From IMG/VR virus record IMGVR_UViG_3300019776_000324, positions 248,001 to 312,000 of that record: a stretch of 64,000 nt of DNA. The stretch is one strand, 5' to 3'. Numbering within the stretch: position 1 is the stretch's first letter; each line of letters starts with the position of its first letter. Below are positions 20,912 to 39,378 of the stretch, piece by piece. Below the pieces are notes generated by a model that had not been told where the DNA came from, ran no database searches, and was given only the letters and a program-made list of their open reading frames with translations. Both the position numbers and the translations under genes were made by a program.

Positions 20912-23191
20912 ATGCAAAACAATCCAGAAATCGAACAAATAGTTGAATCCGCAGTTAAAATTGCCCGTGATCTCAAACACGAGTATGTTTTAACCGAACA
21001 TGTGTTATTGGCATTGATTCGCTATAATCCGTTTAATAAAGTTTTAGAAAAATTTGGCACTGACATTACCATGTTAGACGCCGAGCTCGAATCATATCTG
21101 CATAGCCTAACCAGCTTGGTCACGGACAAGAATGTCCAGCCTAAAAAGACCAATGCACTTGAACGCTGTTTTAATCGTGCCATGACACAGGTTCTGTTTA
21201 CAGGCCGTCGCACAATGACCACAGCTGACTTGTACCTAGCAATGATGGCTGAAAACAATAGCCACGCACACTACTACTTGTTAAAGTACGGTATCAAGAA
21301 ACAGGAGTTTATGGATTTCTGGAACACCAACTACAATCAAGCAGATGCAGTAATCAGCGATCAACAAGCCAACGAAATCCTAACTGAACATTGTACTAAC
21401 CTTACCAAGTTGGCCAATGAAGATCGACTAGAACCAATGATTGGCCGTAGTGACGAACTACAAGAAATGATCACTGTACTAGCCCGTAGATTCAAACCCA
21501 ATGTGATCATGGTAGGTGATCCTGGTGTAGGTAAAACTGCCATCATCGAAGGACTTGCACAAGAAATTGCACAGGGCCGTGTACCTGAGTTTATTCGAGA
21601 CAACGAAGTATGGTCATTAGAAATTGGATCATTGCTTGCTGGTAGCAAATACCGTGGTGAGTTTGAAGAAAAGTTCAAGCAAGTTATCCAAGCATTAGAA
21701 GCCAAGAAGAATTGTATCTTGTTTATTGACGAAGCACACACTATGATGGGTGCTGGTAGTTCCAGCAACAGTAGTCTGGACTTTGCCAACATGCTAAAGC
21801 CGGCTATTACCAAAGGCAACATCAAGGTTGTAGCAAGTACAACTTGGGAAGAATACTACGAGAGCTTTGAAAAGGATCGTGCCCTGATGCGTCGCTTCCA
21901 TCGTGTCAGCATCGACGAGCCAAGCAATGAAGTTACTGAACAGATTCTTATTGGACTCAGTCCACGCTTGGAAAAGTTCCACAATGTGTTAATTGACACT
22001 GATGCTATCACAGCCGCAGTCGAACTGAGTGGCCGCTATATCCATGATCGTAAGAACCCAGACAAGAGTATTGACTTGATTGACGGTGCTTGTGCCAAAG
22101 AGCGTGTAAAAGATCAAGGCAATGTTACTGTTACTCGTGATATGATCATGGCACAGTTGAGTCGTGTAACTGATGTTCCGGTTGATCGACTACAAAATGA
22201 GCGCAGTGCTAATATCCTTGAGCTTGATAGCAATATCAAACAACGCTTGTATGGACAAGATAGCGCAGTAGACGCAGTGCTAGAGCGTGTGTATATCAAC
22301 TTCTCGGGCATTGGCAACAACAAGCGTCCTATTGCCAGCTTCTTGTTCTTAGGACCCACAGGTACAGGTAAAACAGAACTGGCCAAGTTGCTGGCTGAAA
22401 ACTTGGATATGAAACTGCTCAAGTATGACATGAGTGAGTATCAAGAAAAGCACACAGTAAGTAGCTTGATTGGTGCGCCTCCGGGCTATGTGGGCTTTGA
22501 AGATGGCAATGTGGGCGGTGGTAAACTCATCAGTGATGTAAGCAAGAACCCATTTAGTATCTTGTTGTTTGATGAAATTGAAAAGGCTCATCCAGATGTA
22601 ACCAATATCATGTTACAAATGCTAGACGAAGCCCGCATCACAAGTAGCAACGGTAAAACTGTAGATCTCAAGAACTGCATTATTATCATGACCAGTAACT
22701 TGGGTGCCCGCGACAACGAACAAAACAACATTGGCTTTGGACAAAGTTTAGAAAAGACCGGTAGTGAAGATAAAGCAATGAAGGACTTCTTCAAGCCAGA
22801 GTTGCGTAATCGTATTGATCAAGTATGTAAATTTGTCAAACTCGACAGCTTGGCTGTTAAGAAAGTTGTTGTTAAATTTGTTGATGAACTTAAAGTTAGT
22901 TTAGAAGCCAAGAACATTCGTTTAACTTTGACTGAATCTGCTATTGAGTTACTAGCAGAGCAGGGTTACGATAACAAGATGGGTGCTCGTCCGTTAAGTC
23001 GTAAAATTGACGAACTTATCCGTGTGCCATTGAGTAAGCGTATATTGTTTGATCAACTTGAAAATTGCACAATTCATGTGGTCACTCGTGATGGTGCTAT
23101 TGACTTTGTTACTGATGATCCAAACAGTGTACAACCTGTGGTAAACGAGGATGGGTATATAGTTCTTGACCAATTTAAACCTAACATTTAA
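20912..23191 (+). CDS. clpA: ATP-dependent Clp protease ATP-binding subunit ClpA
   Basis: Clp N-domain, two AAA+ modules (GDPGVGKT, GPTGTGKT), IGF ClpP-docking loop, GARPL; no ClpB M-domain. Confidence 0.93.
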   Translation: MQNNPEIEQIVESAVKIARDLKHEYVLTEHVLLALIRYNPFNKVLEKFGTDITMLDAELESYLHSLTSLVTDKNVQPKKTNALERCFNRAMTQVLFTGRRTMTTADLYLAMMAENNSHAHYYLLKYGIKKQEFMDFWNTNYNQADAVISDQQANEILTEHCTNLTKLANEDRLEPMIGRSDELQEMITVLARRFKPNVIMVGDPGVGKTAIIEGLAQEIAQGRVPEFIRDNEVWSLEIGSLLAGSKYRGEFEEKFKQVIQALEAKKNCILFIDEAHTMMGAGSSSNSSLDFANMLKPAITKGNIKVVASTTWEEYYESFEKDRALMRRFHRVSIDEPSNEVTEQILIGLSPRLEKFHNVLIDTDAITAAVELSGRYIHDRKNPDKSIDLIDGACAKERVKDQGNVTVTRDMIMAQLSRVTDVPVDRLQNERSANILELDSNIKQRLYGQDSAVDAVLERVYINFSGIGNNKRPIASFLFLGPTGTGKTELAKLLAENLDMKLLKYDMSEYQEKHTVSSLIGAPPGYVGFEDGNVGGGKLISDVSKNPFSILLFDEIEKAHPDVTNIMLQMLDEARITSSNGKTVDLKNCIIIMTSNLGARDNEQNNIGFGQSLEKTGSEDKAMKDFFKPELRNRIDQVCKFVKLDSLAVKKVVVKFVDELKVSLEAKNIRLTLTESAIELLAEQGYDNKMGARPLSRKIDELIRVPLSKRILFDQLENCTIHVVTRDGAIDFVTDDPNSVQPVVNEDGYIVLDQFKPNI

Positions 23192-26605: not shown

Positions 26606-26633
26606 GAGCCGCTTTGATAGCGGCTTTTGTTTT
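26606..26633 (+). terminator. Intrinsic terminator
   Basis: GAGCCGCT-TTGAT-AGCGGCTT followed by TTGTTTT. Confidence 0.75.
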
Positions 26634-26649
26634 ACAAATAAATACATCT

Positions 26650-29600
26650 ATGAACATTCTTGAATTAGATTCCTATAATCTTGCTGACGCAGTTAAATTT
26701 AATAAAACATTAAATCCTAAAATCTGGGCTGGCGAAACAATGCGCCCCGAAGTTAGAGAAAAGCTATTAGCTATTGCTGAGGATTTTAAAGAATTTCTAG
26801 GCTTAAGTGACATTGAAGTCAAAGACATTACAGTGTCTGGCAGTAATGCCAACTACAGCTATACACCATACAGTGATATTGACTTGCATTTGGTAGTTGA
26901 TATTCCCCGTGCAGACAATGATGAAGTTTATCGTGAATTGTTTGATGCTAAAAAATATCAATACAACGATTTACATGATTACAAAATTGGCGGTTACGAT
27001 GTTGAGTTGTATGTAGAAAACGCAAACGAACCTCCTGTTTCTAAAGGTGTATACTCTATATTAAACAGCGACTGGATAAATATTCCTCGCAAGATTCGCA
27101 GTGAAGTCAACGACAATGCAGTTCGTAGCAAGTACGAAGATCTAAAACACCGTATTGACAATGCCATTGCTAGTGATGATTCTCAAGTGATTGATCGCTT
27201 GGCCAAGAAAATTAAAGATCTGCGTCAAGCAGGACTAGATGCACATGGCGAACTAGGAGCAGAAAATCTTGCTTATAAAATGTTACGCACACAGGGCAAG
27301 ATTAAAGAATTATACGATGCTCGTAATGCAGCCAAAGATCAAGAATTAAGTTTAAAAGAACGAGCACCAAAAGAAAAATTCACTTATGGATTTAAAGAAG
27401 ATGTTGGTATGAGCTGGGACGGAGTTAGTCCTACAACCAAAATGTTCTTGAGTGAAGAACCACCCGAACTCACAGACGAAGAAGTACTACGAGATTTTAT
27501 TAAATTCTGCGTTCAAGAATTAAAAATTGAAGCATTACCCAAAGTCAAGTTGCGCAGAGATCCACAGTGGAGTGTGCGTAACAAAACATTTGGTCGTTAT
27601 ATCAACGACATTCATACCTTGGAAGTGGCATTTGGTCAACGACACATCATGGATGTGCTCCGTACAGTGGCACACGAATTAACACACAAACATCAACACG
27701 AGCGTGACGGTGCCAAGATGGGTGCAGATGCAGGTGAAACTGGCAGTCCATGGGAAAATGAAGCCAATGCCCGTGCTGGTATTCTAATGCGTGACTATGG
27801 TCGACTACATCCAGAATTGTTTGATAGTAGCCAAACTGAATTGGGCGAAAGTGCCAGCGGTTATATTCCTACTAAGAAACAGGCCAACGATCCTCGTTTC
27901 AAAATGGCACTTACCAAAGATATTCGTCCGGGACAACTAGGCAAAGAAGCAAACAAATTAAAATTAAAGACAGACAGTCAGGGTCATCCACAAATAGCTA
28001 ACCCAAATGGCCTGTTTGAAAAACTAGCATTAGAATTAAATCAGTTCAAGCGCCGTGGTACTGTATTAGAGTCTGAGCAGTTGGATGAAGTTAGTATGCG
28101 TCCCAGCAGTCTTAAACAGTTTGCCAACAGCGAAGAAGCCAAGGGCATACAAGCTGGCTTTGAAGCAGAATTAATTTTCCGTGACACTACCAGCGATGAA
28201 AATGATGGCGAGGACATGGAACCTGACTATGACATGGACGAGCGTTGCCGTAGCATTAGTCAAGTTGTAGAGTTTTTCCAAGATGACGAATACGGATACG
28301 GATTAACTGAGCGTCAAGCTTCACGCTTACAAGACAGCTTGGACGAACAGTACATGGAGTGGTCAGACGAGCAAATGTACGACGCCTGGCGCGATGAGCG
28401 TGATGAATTGATTAAAGATGCGTGGTTGCGTGAAAAATCAATGGACGAGCGCATTCATGCTGCCCTAGTAGACGGATTAGATTTAACAGATGCGCAAGCC
28501 GATGCTGTTGTTAAACTGCACGATGATCGTGCCAGTGGCAAAATCAAAGGCAGTGAAATGAGCGATGAGCAGTTGGAGATGGCCAGCCAGTACAGCGAAG
28601 CTGTTTCCATTGCTGAAGATATTTTACAAGAAGATGTTGAACAAACCATAGAAAAAGAAGATGGTTTCTATGATGAAGTCTTAGATGATTTCCGCAGTAA
28701 TTTTTATGTTGATGATGATTCGGGCTTTTTTGATGATGTTGGCCTGCGCTGGATGAGTGATGTTGCTAACTCATATGACTTGGGTTGGCCTTATCTAACT
28801 GGCGGTGGCGGCAATGATGGCTCACGCAGTTGGGAAGAAATTGGCGATAGTTTACAACAAGCTGTTGATATGCCGGTTAAAGTAAGTAGCGGATATCACA
28901 GTGCTACACGCAAACCAGGTTTGTGGATTGTAGAACCAGACTCTAGTTTAGAACCAGATGATCGTGAAGATTATGGTTTAGAAATTGTAAGCCCTCCTAT
29001 GCCGTTGGAGCAGGCTTTAGAAAAATTAAAACAAGTTGCTGACTGGGCCAACCGCGAGGGTGATGCTTATACCAACAGTTCAACTGGCTTACATATGGGC
29101 GTAAGTGTACCTTACAAAGGTGGTGATGTTGACTACTTAAAGTTGATCCTGTTCCTAGGCGATGAGTATGTGTTAAAATCATTTGGTCGTCAAGCCAACA
29201 CCTATACCAAGAGTGCAATGAGCAAGTTTAAAGAAAACATCAAAGGTGGCCGTACTGATCCAATGAGCGTGATCAAACTCATGCAACACGGCCTGCTTGA
29301 GTTGGCACAGCGTGAAGTACAAAAAGGTGTTGGTGAAGGCAAGTATACCAGTGCTCACAAACAAAACAAATATATTGAATTCCGTAGTGCCGGAGGAGAT
29401 TGGTTAGCAGGTACCAATCCAATGCTAGGCGAAGCTGATGATGGATTTGTCGCTGGTAGTATGGACAAATTACAAAACACCATGATGCGCTATGCCTATG
29501 CCATGTATCTGGCAAGTCGTCCAGATCTTGAGCGCAGAGAATATGCTAAAAAGTTATACAAGCTAATTGCTCCCGAAGGCGATAGTCAACTGGCCCTGTT

Positions 29601-30849
29601 TAGTCAGTATGCTGCAGGCGAGCTCACAGCTGAGCAACTCAAAAAGCAATGGGCCGAAAAGACCATTGGCAAAGAAAAGAAAATGAACCAGCGTTGGAAA
29701 CTGTTCCAATTTGATAAAGTTGCTGACCAATGGTTGCCTGTCCCGGGTGCTGAGTGGAACGGTTACACTGAAGATCAAGTTAAAAATGCAGTATGGAGCA
29801 AGTATGGTCGCGAAGCATTAGACTCAGGTGAGTATGAATTACGCAACATGAGTGAAGATCAACAGTGGGAAGTCTACGATGTCAACACCGGTGATGTTCT
29901 TGAAATTGTTAAAGGCAAGAACAAAGGCGAAGTTGCTGACAAAGTGTACGACAAGTATAAGGATCAAGGAATAGGATTCAATGTTCGTCCGTATGAGGAT
30001 CCAACTACATTGACTCCTCGTGCCAAGTTAGCCAAGCGTATCGCTCAACCCAAGCAAGAACCTGACCAGACTGTAGATATGACGCCCGGTAATTGGGAAT
30101 TTTTCTACGAACCAACTGGACGAGTACTTGACGCAGTCTCTGGCGTTAGCACAACTCAAGCTAGAGCTGTGCTGGCTGATGTTCAACGCCGTTATAATGA
30201 TTTGGCCGCACCTAGTATTAAGATGCGTAAAACTGGTGAAGCCGCACCGGATGTAGCACAAAACTTTAGTCAAAATCCTAACCCAACAGCACCTATAGCC
30301 AATCAAGTGCGTATGCCTAACGGTGTGCCTGTTTGGGAATTGTTTGATATTGATACTGGCAGTGCCTTACATGCTATTGCTGATCATACTGGTCGCGAAG
30401 CATATACTCAAGGCATGGCATGGTTGCGCTCAGTTGGTGCTGAAAATCCAGAAACATACGGCGAGCGTTTTGCTATTCGTCCCAAGCGTTTACAACCAGG
30501 AGAACAAAATTTATCAGCTCCGCAAGATGCTACACAACGAGTAGGATCCTGGAGCATATATGATGTTACCTTAGGAAGAGAAATCAGTAGAATGGACGAT
30601 GTTTCGTTCGCACAGGCTGATGCTCGTGCTAATGAATTAGAGCGTAGCACTGGACATAACATGTCAGTTAGAGGTTTATCTGAGAACTTTGCCGATGGCA
30701 AGGGTCCCGGTCGCCCAGGAGATAGTCAGCGTCACGGAATACCTAAAGGTGCTACTATAGCTGAGTTAGAAAAAGCAGCTAAAGCACCAGGTCGTAAAGG
30801 ACAATTGGCCCGTTGGCAGTTAAATATGCGTAGAGGAAAGAAAAAATGA
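26650..30849 (+). CDS. Polyvalent protein: Pol-beta-type nucleotidyltransferase + HExxH metallopeptidase + putative amidoligase + small modules
   Basis: GSNA..SDIDLH; VAHELTH..E.EANA; GFEAE..EPDSSL..GLEIVSPP..STGLH..IEFRS. Start MNILE 5 nt after TAAATA. Confidence 0.8.
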   Translation: MNILELDSYNLADAVKFNKTLNPKIWAGETMRPEVREKLLAIAEDFKEFLGLSDIEVKDITVSGSNANYSYTPYSDIDLHLVVDIPRADNDEVYRELFDAKKYQYNDLHDYKIGGYDVELYVENANEPPVSKGVYSILNSDWINIPRKIRSEVNDNAVRSKYEDLKHRIDNAIASDDSQVIDRLAKKIKDLRQAGLDAHGELGAENLAYKMLRTQGKIKELYDARNAAKDQELSLKERAPKEKFTYGFKEDVGMSWDGVSPTTKMFLSEEPPELTDEEVLRDFIKFCVQELKIEALPKVKLRRDPQWSVRNKTFGRYINDIHTLEVAFGQRHIMDVLRTVAHELTHKHQHERDGAKMGADAGETGSPWENEANARAGILMRDYGRLHPELFDSSQTELGESASGYIPTKKQANDPRFKMALTKDIRPGQLGKEANKLKLKTDSQGHPQIANPNGLFEKLALELNQFKRRGTVLESEQLDEVSMRPSSLKQFANSEEAKGIQAGFEAELIFRDTTSDENDGEDMEPDYDMDERCRSISQVVEFFQDDEYGYGLTERQASRLQDSLDEQYMEWSDEQMYDAWRDERDELIKDAWLREKSMDERIHAALVDGLDLTDAQADAVVKLHDDRASGKIKGSEMSDEQLEMASQYSEAVSIAEDILQEDVEQTIEKEDGFYDEVLDDFRSNFYVDDDSGFFDDVGLRWMSDVANSYDLGWPYLTGGGGNDGSRSWEEIGDSLQQAVDMPVKVSSGYHSATRKPGLWIVEPDSSLEPDDREDYGLEIVSPPMPLEQALEKLKQVADWANREGDAYTNSSTGLHMGVSVPYKGGDVDYLKLILFLGDEYVLKSFGRQANTYTKSAMSKFKENIKGGRTDPMSVIKLMQHGLLELAQREVQKGVGEGKYTSAHKQNKYIEFRSAGGDWLAGTNPMLGEADDGFVAGSMDKLQNTMMRYAYAMYLASRPDLERREYAKKLYKLIAPEGDSQLALFSQYAAGELTAEQLKKQWAEKTIGKEKKMNQRWKLFQFDKVADQWLPVPGAEWNGYTEDQVKNAVWSKYGREALDSGEYELRNMSEDQQWEVYDVNTGDVLEIVKGKNKGEVADKVYDKYKDQGIGFNVRPYEDPTTLTPRAKLAKRIAQPKQEPDQTVDMTPGNWEFFYEPTGRVLDAVSGVSTTQARAVLADVQRRYNDLAAPSIKMRKTGEAAPDVAQNFSQNPNPTAPIANQVRMPNGVPVWELFDIDTGSALHAIADHTGREAYTQGMAWLRSVGAENPETYGERFAIRPKRLQPGEQNLSAPQDATQRVGSWSIYDVTLGREISRMDDVSFAQADARANELERSTGHNMSVRGLSENFADGKGPGRPGDSQRHGIPKGATIAELEKAAKAPGRKGQLARWQLNMRRGKKK

Positions 30850-31397
30850 GAGCTAGTGATTTTATAACAGAAGCAGTTAAACAACGCTTGGATCCCAAGT
30901 GCTGGAAGGGCAAGCACAAAGAAGGCACCAAAGTAAAAGGTGGTGTTAGAGTTAACAACTGTGTGCCCAACGAAAGTGTTGAACTAGATGAAGAATTTGA
31001 TCTTATCGAAAGCATTATTGAAACACTAGCTGAACGCAATCAAGTTGATGCTGAAGCTATCTGGGAAGATCTAGAGTCATTAACTGATGATGAGCTGTAT
31101 GTGTTTGCTACTACAACTCCAGTCATGGAAGATTGGCAAAAAGTCAATAAGAAGGACAAAACAGATGGCATGAGTACAAAAGCTGTTAAGGCCTATCGTC
31201 GTGAACATCCTGGTTCAAAGTTAAAGACTGCTGTGACTACCAAGCCCAGCAAGTTAAAGAAGGGTAGTAAAGCCAGCAAGCGTCGTAAGAGTTATTGCTC
31301 ACGCTCAAAGGGTCAAATGAAAATGCACAACATCAGCTGTGCGAAAACTCCAGATAAAGCTATCTGCAAAGCCCGCCGTCGTTGGAACTGTGAATGA
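30846..31397 (+). CDS. Putative head-internal protein with basic Cys-containing modules
   Basis: MRASDFITEA leader; CWKG..NCVP and RRKSYC.RS.GQ..ICKARRRWNC. Confidence 0.65.
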   Translation: MRASDFITEAVKQRLDPKCWKGKHKEGTKVKGGVRVNNCVPNESVELDEEFDLIESIIETLAERNQVDAEAIWEDLESLTDDELYVFATTTPVMEDWQKVNKKDKTDGMSTKAVKAYRREHPGSKLKTAVTTKPSKLKKGSKASKRRKSYCSRSKGQMKMHNISCAKTPDKAICKARRRWNCE

Positions 31398-33385
31398 GAT
31401 TTAAGGAATTTGTCACAGAATACAGCCAGCTAAAAACACAGCGGGCTCATCGTGATGGCTTAGATCTTGAGGTTCGTAGTAATGATGAAAATGTAAGCAT
31501 CTATGCTTATGCCAATGGTAAAGAACTTGCCCATGTGCATTTTGATCGAGTTGGTAACAATATTCTACCATATGATTTAGAAGTGGGCGAACACTATCGC
31601 GGTCAAGGTATTGCTAGTGTAATGTATGATTATGCCAAAGAGTTAGGCTATACAATAAAACGCAGTAGCGAGCAAACAGATGCAGGTCGTGCATTCTGGA
31701 ATAAGAATCGCGGTGAAGAAGGAAACATTTGGGAAGATAAAACACTAGATCCTGAGATCTATGGTGAGATGCTTCCCACCTCCACAGTCAAGCGCATTGT
31801 TACCAGTGTAATGAAACAAGTAGATCCTACAGCTAAAGTCACAGTTAAACAAAGTCCAGAAGGTTACTATAATGTTAATAGTGACAAACTTAGATTAGAC
31901 TTTGGTATCACTGCTGATGGTGGCGAGATCAATGCCAACATTGTTAATGCTTATAGTAGTTACAAGGGTGCTGGTGTTGTTACTAACATATTTGCTCAAT
32001 GCTTTAAGGCCGCAGAACAACTATGGGGCAAGCCCGCTAAGTTTGTTATGAGTGCTCACGAAGATCGTGGACACGGAGTATGGCAACACATAGCACAGAA
32101 ACTAGGTGCTGAGTGGCAAGGTAGCATAAGTGAAATAGCCCGCATACCAAATGATTACTATTCTGGAGGTAAAGAATCGTTACCCATTAACCCATCTGCT
32201 AGAAAATCCCAAATAAAACCGTTACCAGGTGGCAGTGGATTTGGATATTATACTCGCGAAGCGCCTGGTAGTATCATTATTTACATTGTGGATCCTAACA
32301 AGCCAGCTGAGCAACGAGATAATAAAAATGATATTATTGTAGCCATGTTAAGTTTAGATAAATGTCAATGGATTCCTGGTGCCTATACAGTTAATTCAGT
32401 CACTACAGACGAGGCGTATCGAGGTCGTGGACTTGGACATAGTTTGTATGGTATAGCATTATCAATCTTAGGTCTTACATTAGTTTCTGGAACCGAACAA
32501 ACATCTAGTGGTAGAAGTATGTGGAAAACAATAAGCAATTTTCCTGGAGTAGACATTAAAGGTTATACCAAAGCAACAGATAATCAAGCAAAACAACTAT
32601 TAAAACAAAATGGTGCTCAACCACTTACCGGAGACTATTGGACTTTTCCTATCAAACAAGGTAAACACGAACTTAAAAGCACCATACCGGATGTGCCAAC
32701 ATATCATACTCAATTTGCTAAAGATGTGCCGTACCACAAAATCTATAGAACTGGTCTAATTGCCAAGTGGAATCCAGGTCGAACTAATACTGTAAATGAA
32801 ATAGCCCGCATACCACAAAGCGAACTAGGTGACTGGGGAGAAGAAGGAACTATTGTTCCACCAGAACATCCAGTAGAAAAGAAGCCATTGCCTGGCGGCA
32901 GTAAGTTTACCTATGCTGTAGATAAAAACAGCCAGGGCAATCTAGAAATACTAATATTCGATGGCGAAAAGTTAGCTGCCGAATTAGACTTGTTTGAAAC
33001 AGGTGATGTGCTGAACACTTGGGGTGTAGAAACTATTGTAGTTGAACGCCCATATCGTGGACAGGGGTTGGGCAAAGCCTTATATGGTATTGCCTTAAGC
33101 ATACTAAAACTTACCATAGAAGCTGGCTCAACACAAACACGACATGGCCAACAGATGTGGTTAATGCTTAACAGTATTCCAGGAGTAGAAGTCAAAGGCT
33201 ACACTATGGTTCCTACTGCCAAGTATCAACCTAACAAGAATGATACCATTGTCAAGCAAGACAAAGACTGGACTCGTTATACATTCCCGGTTCATCCAGG
33301 AAAACAAAGTATGCGTAGTGGTCGCCCAGGTGCTGGACTTTATACTAGTCAAGCAACTATGATAGCTAAATGGACAGGTAAATGA
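31394..33385 (+). CDS. Tandem GNAT-acetyltransferase polyprotein (4 domains)
   Basis: Acetyl-CoA motif A: YRGQGIA (31595), YKGAGV (31961), YRGRGLG (32417), YRGQGLG (33053); three are followed by QT..G...W. Confidence 0.8.
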   Translation: MRFKEFVTEYSQLKTQRAHRDGLDLEVRSNDENVSIYAYANGKELAHVHFDRVGNNILPYDLEVGEHYRGQGIASVMYDYAKELGYTIKRSSEQTDAGRAFWNKNRGEEGNIWEDKTLDPEIYGEMLPTSTVKRIVTSVMKQVDPTAKVTVKQSPEGYYNVNSDKLRLDFGITADGGEINANIVNAYSSYKGAGVVTNIFAQCFKAAEQLWGKPAKFVMSAHEDRGHGVWQHIAQKLGAEWQGSISEIARIPNDYYSGGKESLPINPSARKSQIKPLPGGSGFGYYTREAPGSIIIYIVDPNKPAEQRDNKNDIIVAMLSLDKCQWIPGAYTVNSVTTDEAYRGRGLGHSLYGIALSILGLTLVSGTEQTSSGRSMWKTISNFPGVDIKGYTKATDNQAKQLLKQNGAQPLTGDYWTFPIKQGKHELKSTIPDVPTYHTQFAKDVPYHKIYRTGLIAKWNPGRTNTVNEIARIPQSELGDWGEEGTIVPPEHPVEKKPLPGGSKFTYAVDKNSQGNLEILIFDGEKLAAELDLFETGDVLNTWGVETIVVERPYRGQGLGKALYGIALSILKLTIEAGSTQTRHGQQMWLMLNSIPGVEVKGYTMVPTAKYQPNKNDTIVKQDKDWTRYTFPVHPGKQSMRSGRPGAGLYTSQATMIAKWTGK

Positions 33386-34113
33386 CAACAGTTACCGGTG
33401 GCGTAGTAACAACTGATGGTGCATATACTGTACGCACTTTTGAAACCTCTGGCACATTAACTGTGTCTGGCGGAACATTAACTGATGTGCAATACTTGTT
33501 GATTGCTGGCGGCGGTCGTGCCGCAGTTCCAACTAGTTCCTATGTGGCCGGTGGAGGTGCTGGTGGTGCTCTAACAGGCAACATTACTCTTAATGCTGGT
33601 ACATATCCTGTAGTCATAGGTGAAGCTACAATAAGTAGTGCTTTTAATGATCTTGTAACTATACCCGGCGGCACAGGAGGATTTTATGGTAATGGATTCT
33701 CAGGTGGTTCAGGTGGTGGTGGTGGAGTAATAGGTGTTACTCATATAAATTTTCAGAACTTTGTTGCTGGCAATGGCACACCCGGACAAGGACATGCAGG
33801 GGGCAATCCCTATGGTGGTGGATATCCACCATTTGGCCCAGGTGGCGGTGGTGGTGCATCAGGACCCGGTGGACAAGGCAGTGCTGACGGAGTTGGTGGT
33901 GCAGGTGGCCCAGGCTTAGCCAGCGATATAACTGGTAATACTGTTTATTATGCAGGTGGCGGTGCTGGCAAAGGACCCAAAGGTATTGGGAATAATAGCC
34001 CCGGATACGACAACTACGGAGCTGGCGGTGGTTACTCAAGCACGGTAAATAATAACTACGGAGAGTTACTATCTCCACAACCCGGAGTGTTGATTTTAAG
34101 GTACCTAACATGA
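33382..34113 (+). CDS. Glycine-rich domain protein (phage virion-associated type)
   Basis: YTV.TF..SG.L, YL.IAGGG, GGGAGG, YYAGGGAG, GV.ILRY. Confidence 0.7.
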   Translation: MTTVTGGVVTTDGAYTVRTFETSGTLTVSGGTLTDVQYLLIAGGGRAAVPTSSYVAGGGAGGALTGNITLNAGTYPVVIGEATISSAFNDLVTIPGGTGGFYGNGFSGGSGGGGGVIGVTHINFQNFVAGNGTPGQGHAGGNPYGGGYPPFGPGGGGGASGPGGQGSADGVGGAGGPGLASDITGNTVYYAGGGAGKGPKGIGNNSPGYDNYGAGGGYSSTVNNNYGELLSPQPGVLILRYLT

Positions 34114-34322
34114 GATTTCAAGAAATAGTCGAAGCTAAAAACACAAATCCTATTGTAAATTACAATTTGTGGACAGCACAGGTACAGATCAAACAACCTA
34201 ACTATGTTGGCCGTATTGATGTTACTGTAACTGCTGCCAACGCACAAGATGCTCGCTTGTTAATGAAATCACAGTATGGTGTTGAATTTTGGCAAATTGG
34301 CAGTGTTAAACAAGTAAAATGA
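34110..34322 (+). CDS. Small putative head-internal protein
   Basis: MRFQEIVEA leader; V.A.N..DAR..K.QYG. Confidence 0.6.
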   Translation: MRFQEIVEAKNTNPIVNYNLWTAQVQIKQPNYVGRIDVTVTAANAQDARLLMKSQYGVEFWQIGSVKQVK

Positions 34323-34993: not shown

Positions 34994-35180
34994 ATTTGTT
35001 AACTTGACTGAAGAAGCAAGTGCTTGTAGCACCACAGCAGGCAGTATTGCTCCGGTAAGTTCACCCATTGGTGGAATGGTCGCAAGAAATGCAGGATCTT
35101 TCTTTGCTGGTAAATACACTACTGACGATGCAACGCCTAATACGCCTGCAGAGTACAAAAAGTATAAACGGAAGAAATAA
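34980..35180 (+). CDS. Small putative head-internal protein
   Basis: MRLYEFVNLTEE leader; basic C-terminus. Confidence 0.6.
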   Translation: MRLYEFVNLTEEASACSTTAGSIAPVSSPIGGMVARNAGSFFAGKYTTDDATPNTPAEYKKYKRKK

Positions 35181-35620
35181 TGTTAGCTGATTTATTAAAA
35201 ACTTACTTGGCCAGTACATTTTCGTACTATTTAAAAGCCCACATGTTCCATTGGAATGTGGAAGGTCCAGACTTTGGCGAACTACATGGTTTCTTTTCAC
35301 AAATTTATGAAGATGCGTTTGATGCAGTAGATCCTATTGCTGAATTTATCCGTACTGCAGAAGAATATGCCCCAGGAAGCCTAACCCGCTTTCATGAATT
35401 AACACAAATACAGGACCAAACCAAGGTCCCTCGTGCCCGATTAATGTTAGAAGAATTACTCGCAGATACACAGACCATGAAAGATCTAAGCAAACAAGTG
35501 TTTGATGTTTCAACCCAAGAAGGTCGTGATGATGTTGCAAACTTTGCCGCAGATAGACTAAGCCAACACGGCAAGTACATGTGGCAACTTAAGAGTTATT
35601 TGAAAGACGCTAGGGCATGA
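35180..35620 (+). CDS. dps: Dps family ferritin-like DNA-protection protein
   Basis: K.H.FHWNVEG..F.ELH..F..IYE.....D.IAE; H.KY.WQL. Confidence 0.92.
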   Translation: MLADLLKTYLASTFSYYLKAHMFHWNVEGPDFGELHGFFSQIYEDAFDAVDPIAEFIRTAEEYAPGSLTRFHELTQIQDQTKVPRARLMLEELLADTQTMKDLSKQVFDVSTQEGRDDVANFAADRLSQHGKYMWQLKSYLKDARA

Positions 35621-36256: not shown

Positions 36257-38758
36257 ATGAATTTGTTAAACCTATTTGAAGGACGCGAACCGCATCAACA
36301 AGCTATTGACAAGCTGGAACAGGCTCGTATTGATCACTTAAAAGAAAAAATGGATTACTATGCTAAACACGGCATGGTAGAACAATTCAAAAAAGCCAAA
36401 GCTGAACACGACAGTTATTTTAAAGTTCAAGATGAGTGCATGGGATATGGTAGTGTTGTTGGCGAACAAGGCATTCCTGGTTCAGTACCAACAGAAAAGA
36501 TTCCTGGCAAAGAAGACTTACTCCGAGGCAAGGGTCGTAGCTACTACGAATCAGTCGAAGAAGTTAATCCAAGTAAAAAAGTATTCAAAGACAAAGCTGG
36601 TAAACCAGTAGGAGAGATTGGTATTGATCCTGAATCAAGTCCTGGCAATAGCGAATGGTATGTATATCATTACGGCACAGGTTATAGTGTTGTTGGATTC
36701 GATAGTGCCGCAGAAGCTAAACGCGAATTAATGTATGTTCACAAGCATCCAGAAGCGGTCGAAGGGCACGAATCAACATTTGACGAAGCTGGTATTCCTG
36801 GTAATGTTCCAGTTGAAAAGATTCCAGGTAAAGAAGATTTGCTAAAGGGCAAGGGTCGTAGCTACTACGAAGCCCAAGACCAAAAAAAAAATTCTGAAGA
36901 AGTAGATAAGCTACAAACAGCTGCAAGAGAGTTTATAGAATTAATAAACGATCGCACTGGTCCTATCTATAAAGCATATTATCGTAGTTTTCCAAAAGGT
37001 TCTGCACTAGAAGCAGAACTGCGTAAACGCATTGCCGCCAAGTATGGCGTTGCAGAAAAAGAACTTGCTAACGCCGAAGCTGGCGATCGTGCTCGTCGCA
37101 TGTTTGGTAATAAACTCAATGAAGATCAAAAGTTACATGTAGGTGATCCTATCATTGTTACAGCTCCTAATGAGTTTGAAGGCAAGACTGGTGAGATTGC
37201 AGAGTTCAGCCCAAGTGGCGCATTTGTTGTTGTAAACTTATACAACCACGGTGAACACAGCATGCACCTGAGTGATGTTGAGTTTAATCAATATGCCGCA
37301 GATCAAGAAGATGAAGATGACTGGTACGACGACGGTGCAGAAGATACATTAGAAGAAGAACAAAAAGAATTCCTGTACACAGTTGAATGCGATGGCTACA
37401 ACAAAGGTAACTTTGTTAATAAAAACGACGCAATCTTTAGTGCTCAGTACATGATCTACTATGGCGAAAAAGAATATAACAAGATTGAAGTTATTGAACT
37501 TAAAACAGGTGATGTAATCTGGGAATGGCATGGCAAGAAAGCAGACAACGATGTTGCTCCTACAGAAGTAGAAGTAGGTGAAGGTTGGAGCAACAAGATG
37601 GTTGCTCAAAGAACCGGTCAAGCTCCAACACCATATTCAGTTTATATCAAAGGTAAAGAATGGAAGAGCTTTGCTGACGATGATCATGCTGAAAATGTAG
37701 CTAACAAGTTAAGAGCTAAATTCAAAGCAGAAGGTAAAGATCCTAGTGTTATTACTATTGCACCTACTGACTACGATAAAGATCTTAAAGAATTCGCACC
37801 AGGTGGCGGATATCAAGAACCACCTCCACCAGTATTAAAGAAAAAAGATCCGTTTGATGACGATGATCGTAGTATCTATCCACGCAAGATTCAACAACTA
37901 TTAACCAGTGGTGCTAAAGTAGATAGCCGTGTTCCTGGTGCTATGGGACACATTATTGCAGCTAATGGCGAAATGATTAGAATGAAGCCATTGAACAAGC
38001 CATACAGCCAAAAGAAATATGCTTGGTATATTGATCAAGAGCGTGATGATAAACTTTTATTAAAGCAAGTTGAACCTAACCATTATGTATTGTATGATCG
38101 TGATTGGTTGCCACAAGGCACAACAGAGGCTGCTAATCCAGCACAACAGGCCGCTATTGCCGTTGCTATGAAGAAGGCTGGCAAGAAACCTAAGAGTGTT
38201 GATGAAGGTATCATGGATGTTGTTAAACAAACATTCAACGACAATGTAGTAGGTTGGCCAATGGGCACTTCTACTGAACAGTTTATACAAGGTTGGGCTA
38301 GAGATATTAAAAATCGCACAGGAAAAAATGTTCCAGTAGAAAAGTTAACACAGTTGTACAATAACTATGTTAAGCGTTCTGGTGAACTTATGCAATCACA
38401 TGGCACCACTAACGAAGCTGAAACAGATTATTCTAAGCGTCGCCAGCGTGAGCGTGATGTAGATGCAGGTAAGCCCGTAGCAAAACAGCGCCAACCCAAG
38501 ATGACTGATTATCAAAAGCGCCGTGCTCAGCAGAAGAAAGAAATGGAACTAGGCGAGGATCAAGACACTAGTGGTGTTGAGAGCGCAATTATTCGTCGTA
38601 TTATGGTAGCACACACAGACTTGTTACAACAGTTTGGCCCAGAAAAAGTCATGCAGGCCGCAGAAGAAGTTGCTTACAATGTAGGCGATGTTGACGAAAT
38701 TGGTACCAGTGATGTCAGTGCTTGGGTACACGAAGTCAAACAAATCCTTGGTGCCTAA
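36257..38758 (+). CDS. Modular polyprotein-like head protein
   Basis: MNLLNLFEG leader; many short modules separated by xxE junctions; duplicated 27-aa unit; KOW/SH3-like module LHVGDPIIV..GK.G.I. Confidence 0.65.
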   Translation: MNLLNLFEGREPHQQAIDKLEQARIDHLKEKMDYYAKHGMVEQFKKAKAEHDSYFKVQDECMGYGSVVGEQGIPGSVPTEKIPGKEDLLRGKGRSYYESVEEVNPSKKVFKDKAGKPVGEIGIDPESSPGNSEWYVYHYGTGYSVVGFDSAAEAKRELMYVHKHPEAVEGHESTFDEAGIPGNVPVEKIPGKEDLLKGKGRSYYEAQDQKKNSEEVDKLQTAAREFIELINDRTGPIYKAYYRSFPKGSALEAELRKRIAAKYGVAEKELANAEAGDRARRMFGNKLNEDQKLHVGDPIIVTAPNEFEGKTGEIAEFSPSGAFVVVNLYNHGEHSMHLSDVEFNQYAADQEDEDDWYDDGAEDTLEEEQKEFLYTVECDGYNKGNFVNKNDAIFSAQYMIYYGEKEYNKIEVIELKTGDVIWEWHGKKADNDVAPTEVEVGEGWSNKMVAQRTGQAPTPYSVYIKGKEWKSFADDDHAENVANKLRAKFKAEGKDPSVITIAPTDYDKDLKEFAPGGGYQEPPPPVLKKKDPFDDDDRSIYPRKIQQLLTSGAKVDSRVPGAMGHIIAANGEMIRMKPLNKPYSQKKYAWYIDQERDDKLLLKQVEPNHYVLYDRDWLPQGTTEAANPAQQAAIAVAMKKAGKKPKSVDEGIMDVVKQTFNDNVVGWPMGTSTEQFIQGWARDIKNRTGKNVPVEKLTQLYNNYVKRSGELMQSHGTTNEAETDYSKRRQRERDVDAGKPVAKQRQPKMTDYQKRRAQQKKEMELGEDQDTSGVESAIIRRIMVAHTDLLQQFGPEKVMQAAEEVAYNVGDVDEIGTSDVSAWVHEVKQILGA
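36470..36871 (+). repeat. Duplicated 81-nt/27-aa unit GIPG.VP.EKIPGKEDLL.GKGRSYYE
   Basis: Copies at 36470-36550 and 36791-36871; last 24 nt identical. Confidence 0.9.
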
Positions 38759-39378
38759 TGAGAGCAGAAGAGTTCACAGTTAGTCTAGACGAAAAATTAG
38801 ATGAAATTCTAGTTCGTCTCTGTGAACTTGTAGTTCAAGGTCAAAAAGAAAATCAAGACCTAGGCATGGTGGCTGCCGCTGTATTAGATCCCGATGATAA
38901 TTGTGTAACAGGTATTAACTATCCTGCACGAGATGGTAAGCGTGTTCATGCCGAGCGTGCCGCTATAAACAACTATATTGATCGTTTTGGCCCTGTTCCT
39001 CCTGGCAGTATTGTTATTACAACATTAAGTCCATGCAATCAAGATATGGATAGTCGAGCAGGAGAAAGTTGTCAAGCGTTATTAGATCAACACGGCATTG
39101 ATTCAGTTTACTGTGGTTATGTTGATCCTACACAAGATAAGCATCAAGTCGGCTTAACTGCTAATAAAAAAATACAAGCATTGTGTAAAGCATTCGCTGA
39201 CACTTTTCTTAAAGACAAACTAGACGAACTTGAATTTTTAGGTAGCCCTTGCACCAAAGACTGTTCAGGTCATCGTGCCGGATATGCATGGGCACAAAGC
39301 AAAGGCGGTCGTGTTGCTAACAGTCCATTTAGTCCTAGCTTTAATAACGGCAGTCAGCTTTATGTTGATGGTAAGTAA
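38758..39378 (+). CDS. Zn-dependent cytidine/dCMP-deaminase-fold protein with C-terminal small Cys module
   Basis: VHAERAA and TLSPC..(10)..C; start MRAEEF (TAATG coupling). Confidence 0.8.
   Translation: MRAEEFTVSLDEKLDEILVRLCELVVQGQKENQDLGMVAAAVLDPDDNCVTGINYPARDGKRVHAERAAINNYIDRFGPVPPGSIVITTLSPCNQDMDSRAGESCQALLDQHGIDSVYCGYVDPTQDKHQVGLTANKKIQALCKAFADTFLKDKLDELEFLGSPCTKDCSGHRAGYAWAQSKGGRVANSPFSPSFNNGSQLYVDGK

Follow-up and report, generated by a model that had tools for sequence, protein, structure and literature searches.

The question raised by this locus is why two clearly diverged modules of a single phage gene should begin with exactly the same nucleotides. The gene, here called P0001, encodes 663 amino acids (aa) and lies in a window of 64,000 nucleotides, bases 248001-312000 of IMG/VR record IMGVR_UViG_3300019776_000324. 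Its product consists of a short leader and four modules, M1 to M4. M3 and M4 are paralogs that now share 34% aa identity (E 6e-33), and both start with the 19-mer TGAAATAGCCCGCATACCA, which is exact at 32131-32149 and at 32797-32815. In the reading that we consider best, with a probability of roughly 0.6, P0001 would be a capsid-targeted polyprotein that is cut into GNAT-like proteins, and the junction in front of M3- and M4-type modules would also be an in-frame recombination site. The recombination part of this reading is carried by a cluster of mosaic breakpoints at the junction and an unusual conservation of synonymous sites there, and the cleavage part by protease-type motifs at the module ends.

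The contig that holds the window is 344,244 bp long, has direct terminal repeats, is rated complete and has 40.5% G+C. Every long open reading frame (ORF) of the window is on the + strand. Pfam matches in this genome include a gp21-type Peptidase_S77 prohead protease at genome positions 89202-89861 (PF03420; 82 bits, E 6e-24) as well as a major capsid protein of the gp23 type (PF07068; 325 bits, E 1e-97), and the phage is therefore a T4-like jumbo phage. Freshwater lakes and wetlands are the source of its relatives and of the sequencing runs that hold parts of the genome. In blastn and tblastn searches of cultured-phage records with the 663-aa gene no match was obtained (the collection may omit the phage's own or very near genomes); the lineage is known solely from metagenomes.

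The gene and its parts are listed below. Module ranges are set by the predicted cut after Glu; the Pfam and NCBIfam scans used residues 115-246, 247-468 and 469-663.

31394-33385, + strand: the 663-aa gene P0001, with a leader resembling a capsid-targeting sequence (CTS), then M1-M2-M3-M4 (ORF, translation, Pfam, homologs)
31394-31420, + strand: leader MRFKEFVTE, a candidate CTS ending in V-T-E (likeness to the T4 CTS)
31421-31735, + strand: M1 (aa 10-114; 1-114 with the leader), a minimal GNAT ending in I-W-E at 31727-31735 (Pfam/NCBIfam)
31736-32134, + strand: M2 (aa 115-247), a GNAT-like alpha/beta domain ending in I-S-E (fold model)
32131-32149, + strand: first copy of the 19-mer, at the M2/M3 junction; its GAA encodes Glu247, the predicted P1 residue
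32135-32800, + strand: M3 (aa 248-469), a paralog of M4 carrying insertions, ending in V-N-E (homology to M4)
32797-32815, + strand: second copy of the 19-mer, at the M3/M4 junction; its GAA encodes Glu469, and nucleotide homology to 40-70 other loci begins here
32801-33382, + strand: M4 (aa 470-663), the conserved C-terminal GNAT module of almost all relatives (Pfam, fold model)

The junction sequence, its breakpoints and its synonymous sites

A preliminary description of this DNA had claimed that the 19-mer is identical in nucleotides at the starts of M3 and M4, and it is so at both coordinates. The peptide contexts given there, ISE/IARIP, VNE/IARIP and IWE/D (the slash marks the predicted cut; IWE is residues 112-114), are also correct. 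Neither the window nor the 344,244-bp genome contains a further copy of the 19-mer, even at 3-4 mismatches, and two matches occurred in 0 of 100 shuffles. With one mismatch the repeat grows to 23 nt. The copies are 666 nt, or 222 codons, apart, so the repeat is in frame. The best other stretch of DNA shared by M3 and M4 reaches 70% identity over 50 nt. The 18-nt core of the repeat, GAA ATA GCC CGC ATA CCA, encodes E-IARIP, and the residue before the Glu is S or N. ATA, GCC and CGC are minority codons in this genome (20%, 19% and 21%), and six identical codons for one peptide have P = 0.0033 under its codon usage. The string GAAATAG (32132-32138 and 32798-32804) also creates a TAG stop in the -1 frame at the very junction; this stop exists because the minority codon ATA codes for the Ile.

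Relatives of the gene vary widely in their composition. A word search gave 186 homologs of 368-1000 residues, and modules were mapped onto the best 120 of them. At least 17 architectures were found in this set, among them X-M1-M4 (54), X-M1-X-M4 (25) and X-M4 (12), so that module number is not fixed; the order M1-M2-M3-M4 is unique to the window within it. In nearly all homologs the last module is an M4, with the start [LIVMF]xE-IAR(I/L)P. M2 is also present within other architectures, and M3 occurs in 2 of 127 fetched loci as well as in P0002, P0007 (ordered M1-M3-X), P0031 and P0119. In the same region the relative L002 has M1-M4, L001 an unrelated 90-residue module followed by M4, and the close relative L065 M1-M3-M4. 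Several phages carry M4 as a stand-alone gene with the start MRFFE-IARIP. Families fused in homologs include GH19 chitinase/lysozyme-like, ART-PolyVal and cytidine deaminase domains (PF00182, PF18760 for ART-PolyVal, PF00383 and PF22028). The ~1395-aa ORF of a distant relative, L042, has an M4-like start followed by deaminase-like, DUF6321-like and further GNAT-like segments; it takes the polyprotein form of this locus to an extreme.

The same borders are seen in nucleotide comparisons. When the window was compared by blastn with the 127 fetched loci, conservation ran to ~31400, through the last part of the DUF6321 gene and the leader; M2 and M3 were nearly unmatched, and coverage jumped to 40-70 loci at 32800. 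Assembled contigs from the freshwater runs gave the same coverage pattern. Some of these pieces are identical to the window, and in a relative with M1 joined to M4 the alignment restarts at 32796.

Similarity on the two sides was compared in 51 genes with a direct M1-M4 junction. Pearson correlations were 0.85 and 0.71 within modules and 0.34 across the junction, with 132 of the 1275 pairs strongly discordant; the two sides of the junction have different histories. Among 1275 pairs of 51 segments, sharp identity transitions fell at the junction six times, in the upstream part once and inside M4 not at all. Some pairs of loci have 85-88% DNA identity downstream and random identity upstream, with the switch exactly at the G of GAA. 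L068 and L069 are 97-100% identical over the 330 nt upstream and through the 18-mer and ~77% identical beyond it; for L070 and L069 the pattern is reversed. The best breakpoint for this trio lies between informative sites -1 and +17 (counts of 149:2 upstream and 47:58 downstream, Fisher p 1e-25). Two further pairs, L102/L109 and L090/L118, have an identical upstream part, and their divergence starts right after the conserved patch. Mosaic breakpoints thus cluster at the junction, a result that we regard as secure. The proposal of the preliminary description that the junction is a recombination handle for swapping cassettes gains support from these breakpoints within or beside the 18-mer, for modules of the M3/M4 type. 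A crossover between the two copies in the window would remove M3 in frame.

By its own terms the proposal would have failed if relatives had a fixed number of modules or if identity at the junction did not exceed that of its flanks. Neither is so, and two sets of modules bear on the second point. Exact-18-mer scans are motif-biased and were excluded from conservation statistics (~23 of 59 metagenome matches were chance occurrences in unrelated DNA). The codon set comprised 25 distinct M4 modules found by peptide patterns unrelated to the junction, with pairwise protein identities of 42-96% (median 63%). Modal codons in IARIP were ATA in 100%, GCC in 84%, CGC in 71%, ATA in 96% and CCA in 96% of the modules, compared with typically 30-70% at other invariant residues. 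The junction's excess of synonymous conservation was matched by 4 of 100,000 random sets of six conserved codon columns. For a tree-based count, 29 modules were defined without use of the junction, and the core is nearly invariant among them. By parsimony, synonymous changes numbered 0 (I), 4 (A), 6 (R), 0 (I) and 2 (P), and columns of the same degeneracy averaged ~6-10; both Ile columns and the Pro column had the fewest changes of their classes. Relative to other conserved codons, the core has about three-fold fewer synonymous changes.

The conserved patch is often ~35 nt long. The 18-mer is equally conserved in stand-alone genes, where it lies 12 nt after the start codon, and at internal positions; its conservation weakens in distant homologs. 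The amino-acid variant EITRIP differs from the core by one base. That a nucleotide-level constraint acts on the 18-mer is, on these grounds, very probable. No RNA structure involving the 18-mer was found by RNAalifold in the first 150 nt of 19 module starts, and there was no Rfam match at E<=1. Promoter- or terminator-like sites were absent at the junctions, with no excess over shuffles, and a search of the rest of the genome found no complement of the motif. With these searches all null, recombination is the only function with positive evidence, and we place the chance that the 18-mer is constrained because of recombination a little below even. Short conserved motifs that act as recombination sites are known to shuffle genes of T4-type phages, internal-protein loci included (PMC2839356).

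Predicted cleavage, the modules and rival explanations

P0001 has seven [LIVM]-x-E triplets, of which four, V-T-E9, I-W-E114, I-S-E247 and V-N-E469, stand at the end of the leader and at the three junctions. A similar signature is found well beyond this gene. In 60 distinct hexapeptides that precede an IARIP-type module start (homologs and loci together), P1 is Glu in all 60 and P3 is I, V, L, M or F in 59 (background 24%), with P2 and P4 varying freely. M1, M2 and M3 end in [LIVF]xE. Other module ends are ...DPDLFE, ...TGIME, ...VWE followed by a short xELDE linker, and ...GSI(S/M/N)E. The mature start YSQLK.QRAHRD follows either MRFKEFVTE or the upstream module end ...DPDLFE, so the leader is exchangeable with the C-terminus of an upstream module, exactly at the Glu.

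Nearly all homologs of P0001, and five genes of this genome, start with MRxxEF[LIV]xE. The internal proteins of T4 carry a 10-residue CTS, MKTYQEFIAE, which is removed by gp21 and in which residues 8 and 10 are processing determinants (PMC8442874, PMC9026906); Asp at P1 prevents this processing in T4 (PMC9026906), and proteases of the gp21 type cleave after Glu at short motifs (PMC5694885). In the capsid protein of the present phage, [LI]xE sites number four within residues 1-42 and one in the other 356 residues. Given the [LIVMF]xE signature, the leader, the protease and the capsid sites, prohead-protease cleavage and capsid targeting are the most economical reading. The protease probably cleaves at the module junctions; packaging of the protein in the head and its injection are also likely, to a slightly lesser degree.

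A sequence of events can be proposed on this basis. The leader MRFKEFVTE would direct the polyprotein into the prohead, where the T4-type protease, acting in trans, would cut after Glu at V-T-E9, I-W-E114, I-S-E247 and V-N-E469. Cleavage would free four small proteins resembling GNAT-type acyltransferases, which, being internal to the head and injected, would enter the host alongside the DNA. Crossovers at the 18-mer, whether with another phage or from one copy to the other within this gene, would join upstream cassettes to an M4-type module in frame.

The modules differ in how well they can be assigned. Over the whole of P0001, Pfam Acetyltransf_1 scores 49.5 bits across three stretches (cut-off 20.7). 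M4 alone scores 22.2 bits with this family and so exceeds the cut-off. M1 scores 19.3-20.8 bits with Acetyltransf_7, _CG and _1, slightly under their cut-offs, and matches an NCBIfam N-acetyltransferase at E 2e-7. M3 alone scores 15.5 bits with Acetyltransf_1, and its GNAT status follows from its homology to M4. The acetyl-CoA (pyrophosphate-binding) loop Q/R-x-x-G-x-G/A reads RGQGIA in M1, RGRGLG in M3 and RGQGLG in M4. M2 has a deviant KGAGVV at the equivalent beta4-alpha3 position, and Pfam and NCBIfam profile scans gave no family match for it; hhalign showed no profile similarity between M2 and M4 (probability 0.3%), and a sequence relationship of the two was rejected. The AlphaFold model of M2 (pLDDT 92.9) matches mostly GNATs, weakly (Foldseek E 4e-3 and weaker, VIA Z 4.5-5.7). 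For the M4 model (pLDDT 82) the top PDB matches are all GNATs (E 3e-4, with modest TM scores of 0.3-0.45). The four GNATs of the preliminary description are thus upheld for M1, M3 and M4 by sequence, and for M2 reduced to a weak resemblance of fold. Judged from sequence, the modules may carry out acyl-CoA-dependent transfer. Pfam scans of the whole protein and of each module found no peptidase domain in P0001.

Several points weigh against the proposal of a cleaved polyprotein with a recombining junction. The E/ISDELRR junction, which is equally mobile, and the start of M2 show ordinary synonymous variation. Shuffling is therefore not strictly dependent on an identical handle, and the constraint on the 18-mer may have another cause, e.g., translation kinetics. 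Eighteen nucleotides are also short for homologous recombination. No contig with a 666-bp deletion and no gain or loss of M3 within the population was seen in the assembled contigs, from which rare variants could be missing. The IARIP peptide is deeply conserved and partly docks on the domain in the M4 model, so that the boundary is structural as well. Cleavage and packaging are predicted from motifs and homology, and the likeness of M2 to GNATs is a weak one at the level of a modelled fold. As for its extent, the nucleotide handle appears limited to M3/M4-type modules. One general handle at every junction is ruled out by the synonymous variation at E/ISDELRR and in the P-side linker (VWE-SELDE), whose synonymous sites vary freely.

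These points lead to the explanations that compete with the proposed one. The 18-mer might be held for some other nucleic-acid reason (a translational pause set by its codons, an mRNA binding site or the TAG in the -1 frame), with breakpoints falling there because it is the sole identical patch at a domain boundary. Such a cause would fit a constraint that is specific to this junction type and absent from the equally shuffled E/ISDELRR, the conservation of minority codons (ATA twice, GCC and CGC), and a conservation as strong 12 nt after the start codon of stand-alone genes as inside longer ones. The searches for RNA structure, Rfam families, promoters and terminators and a genomic complement were nevertheless all null, the unrelated upstream contexts would confine any element to ~18-35 nt, and breakpoints at the patch are observed directly; we consider this explanation unlikely. 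A somewhat smaller chance is given to an uncleaved protein that works as an intact tandem multi-GNAT enzyme, in which [LIVMF]-x-E would be a mere feature of linkers. Tandem GNAT structures are known, and 2wpx and 7q3a are among the fold matches. Against this, the P3/P1 signature holds in 59 of 60 unrelated upstream contexts in which P2 and P4 are variable, the leader and the C-terminus of an upstream module replace each other exactly at the Glu, these modules are also found as stand-alone genes behind a short MRFFE leader, and a matching protease is present together with a capsid propeptide rich in the same sites.

The identity of the two copies could also be due to chance, codon bias or gene conversion local to this genome. 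In L065 (2490-4121, M1-M3-M4) the Ala codon is GCT at both junctions (GAAATAGCTCGCATACCA and GAAATAGCTCGAATACCA) and in the window it is GCC at both, a difference that weakly hints at homogenisation between copies (concerted evolution) within a genome. The value of P = 0.0033 and the minority status of the codons argue against chance, and the 18-mer is kept in phages with one copy, so conversion within the gene is not the whole story. Conservation across phages largely refutes this explanation, which we consider very improbable.

Comparable systems and significance

Injected phage proteins are front-line tools of counter-defence. To our knowledge, renewal of the injected arsenal is known mainly from the small internal-protein loci of T-even phages. 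The T4 internal proteins (IPI-III and Alt) resemble the present case in having a T4-type protease and capsid and a leader of ~10 residues that ends in aliphatic-x-Glu, and their loci likewise hold diverse, rapidly exchanged genes with only the leader in common. The T-even loci are thought to shuffle via short conserved flanking motifs (PMC9026906, PMC8442874, PMC2839356). In contrast, the cargo modules of P0001 are chained in one reading frame with protease-type sites between them, and the motif is coding and placed at the start of a module, where that of the T-even loci is an intergenic promoter/stem-loop element. The predicted cargo here consists of GNAT-like enzymes rather than small basic proteins.

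The PeSL cassettes of T4-type phages also combine a short conserved motif beside variable modules with breakpoints at that motif (PMC2839356). PeSL is a ~100-bp intergenic regulatory element with a sigma-70-like promoter and a hairpin (PMC2839356). The 18-mer is not a PeSL, because it is coding, in frame and without promoter, hairpin or Rfam match.

The closest functional analogy is the VENN-type junction of polymorphic toxins. In CdiA and similar toxins a short conserved peptide likewise separates a constant part from modules that can be exchanged; this border has been proposed as a processing site, and the surrounding DNA supplies the homology by which cassettes are swapped (PMC7662968). Those toxins are bacterial and secreted, have immunity genes and orphan cassettes, and vary in their C-terminal part. 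In the phage gene, by contrast, the constant M4 is C-terminal, the variable cassettes are upstream, there are no immunity genes, and cleavage would be in trans. By this analogy the 18-mer might be a dedicated, selectively maintained in-frame recombination site, the coding counterpart of an integron attachment site or a VENN junction. Taken as a whole, this view would combine a protease cut site, the docking strand of the downstream domain and a DNA crossover point in one sequence, and we hold it only tentatively.

Two further groups share parts of the design. Polyvalent proteins, as portrayed by Iyer et al. (2017), combine effector domains in varying order in one polypeptide, among them GNAT, ART-PolyVal, deaminase, nucleotidyltransferase and amidoligase domains, with presumed delivery alongside the DNA (PMC5512222). 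P0001 and its homologs fit this concept in their many architectures. For polyvalent proteins, embedded peptidase domains are the proposed means of release; in P0001 none was found, and gp21-type sites are present instead. No nucleotide-conserved junction appears in the searched passages of PMC5512222. In phages phiKZ, 201phi2-1 and SPN3US a gp21-related protease cleaves many head proteins, inner-body and ejection proteins among them, after the Glu of short x-X-E motifs, and some of these proteins are cut more than once (PMC5694885, PMC9026906). In these phages propeptides are removed, and separation of chained enzymes is not described; their motif is A/S/G-X-E, compared with aliphatic-X-E here.

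The locus has a design in which enzyme modules are chained in one leader-bearing frame; the DNA of at least one junction is held fixed, and it is there that recombinants switch. If the polyprotein reading is true, it would explain how multi-enzyme payloads are packaged in fixed ratio. It would also supply a signature (an MRxxEF leader, [LIVMF]xE junctions and the 18-mer) by which injected effectors could be recognised in uncultured jumbo phages, and a natural model for filling T4-type capsids with several proteins. Should the 18-mer prove to be a dedicated site, T4-like jumbo phages would re-assort polyproteins of injected enzymes with the frame never broken. The locus also offers a clean test of whether recombination can be the reason for conservation at synonymous sites.

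Neighbouring genes

Genes around P0001, and two small genes elsewhere in the genome, are as follows.

20912-23191, + strand: 759-aa ClpA/ClpB-type double AAA+ protein (Clp_N, AAA, AAA_2 and ClpB_D2-small domains; named 'ATP-dependent protease' in PHROGs)
26614-30849, + strand: 1411-aa polyvalent-type protein with nucleotidyltransferase and amidoligase domains (Pfam)
30846-31397, + strand: DUF6321 gene with the CTS-like start MRASDFITE (Pfam, PHROGs)
33382-34113, + strand: glycine-rich protein with a weak Gly_rich_2 match (phrog_2295), found in ~12 of the 127 related loci
35180-35620, + strand: ferritin/Dps-like protein (Pfam Ferritin, E 1e-19); several related loci conserve it a few genes past the GNAT gene
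38758-39378, + strand: gene with a cytidine/dCMP deaminase domain behind the CTS-like start MRAEEF...
Genome positions 129153-129551 and 129548-129949 (beyond the window): a pair of small neighbouring genes, of 132 and 133 aa, with the starts MRAVEFITE and MRAKEFIRE, candidate capsid-targeted proteins

Starts of the MRxxEF type are found in the neighbouring genes at 30846, 31394, 34110, 34319 and 38758 and in the two genes elsewhere in the genome. The deaminase family of the 38758-39378 gene also occurs inside P0024, a GNAT polyprotein of another phage, which suggests that stand-alone leader-bearing genes and polyprotein cassettes share one pool. The likely true start of the 1411-aa protein is MNILELDSYNL, slightly within the listed TTG ORF, and in P0014, P0098 and P0107, from other phages, the MNIxEL module of its N-terminus stands fused to M2, M4 or both.

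The 3' end of the DUF6321 gene (~31000-31400) forms the conserved left border of the variable region, as judged from blastn coverage and contig depth. The glycine-rich gene, which follows the polyprotein gene directly, may be a variable insert as well. Stop and start codons overlap by 4 nt (ATGA) at 30846-30849, 31394-31397, 33382-33385, 34110-34113 and 34319-34322, which suggests translational coupling across the leader-bearing cluster.

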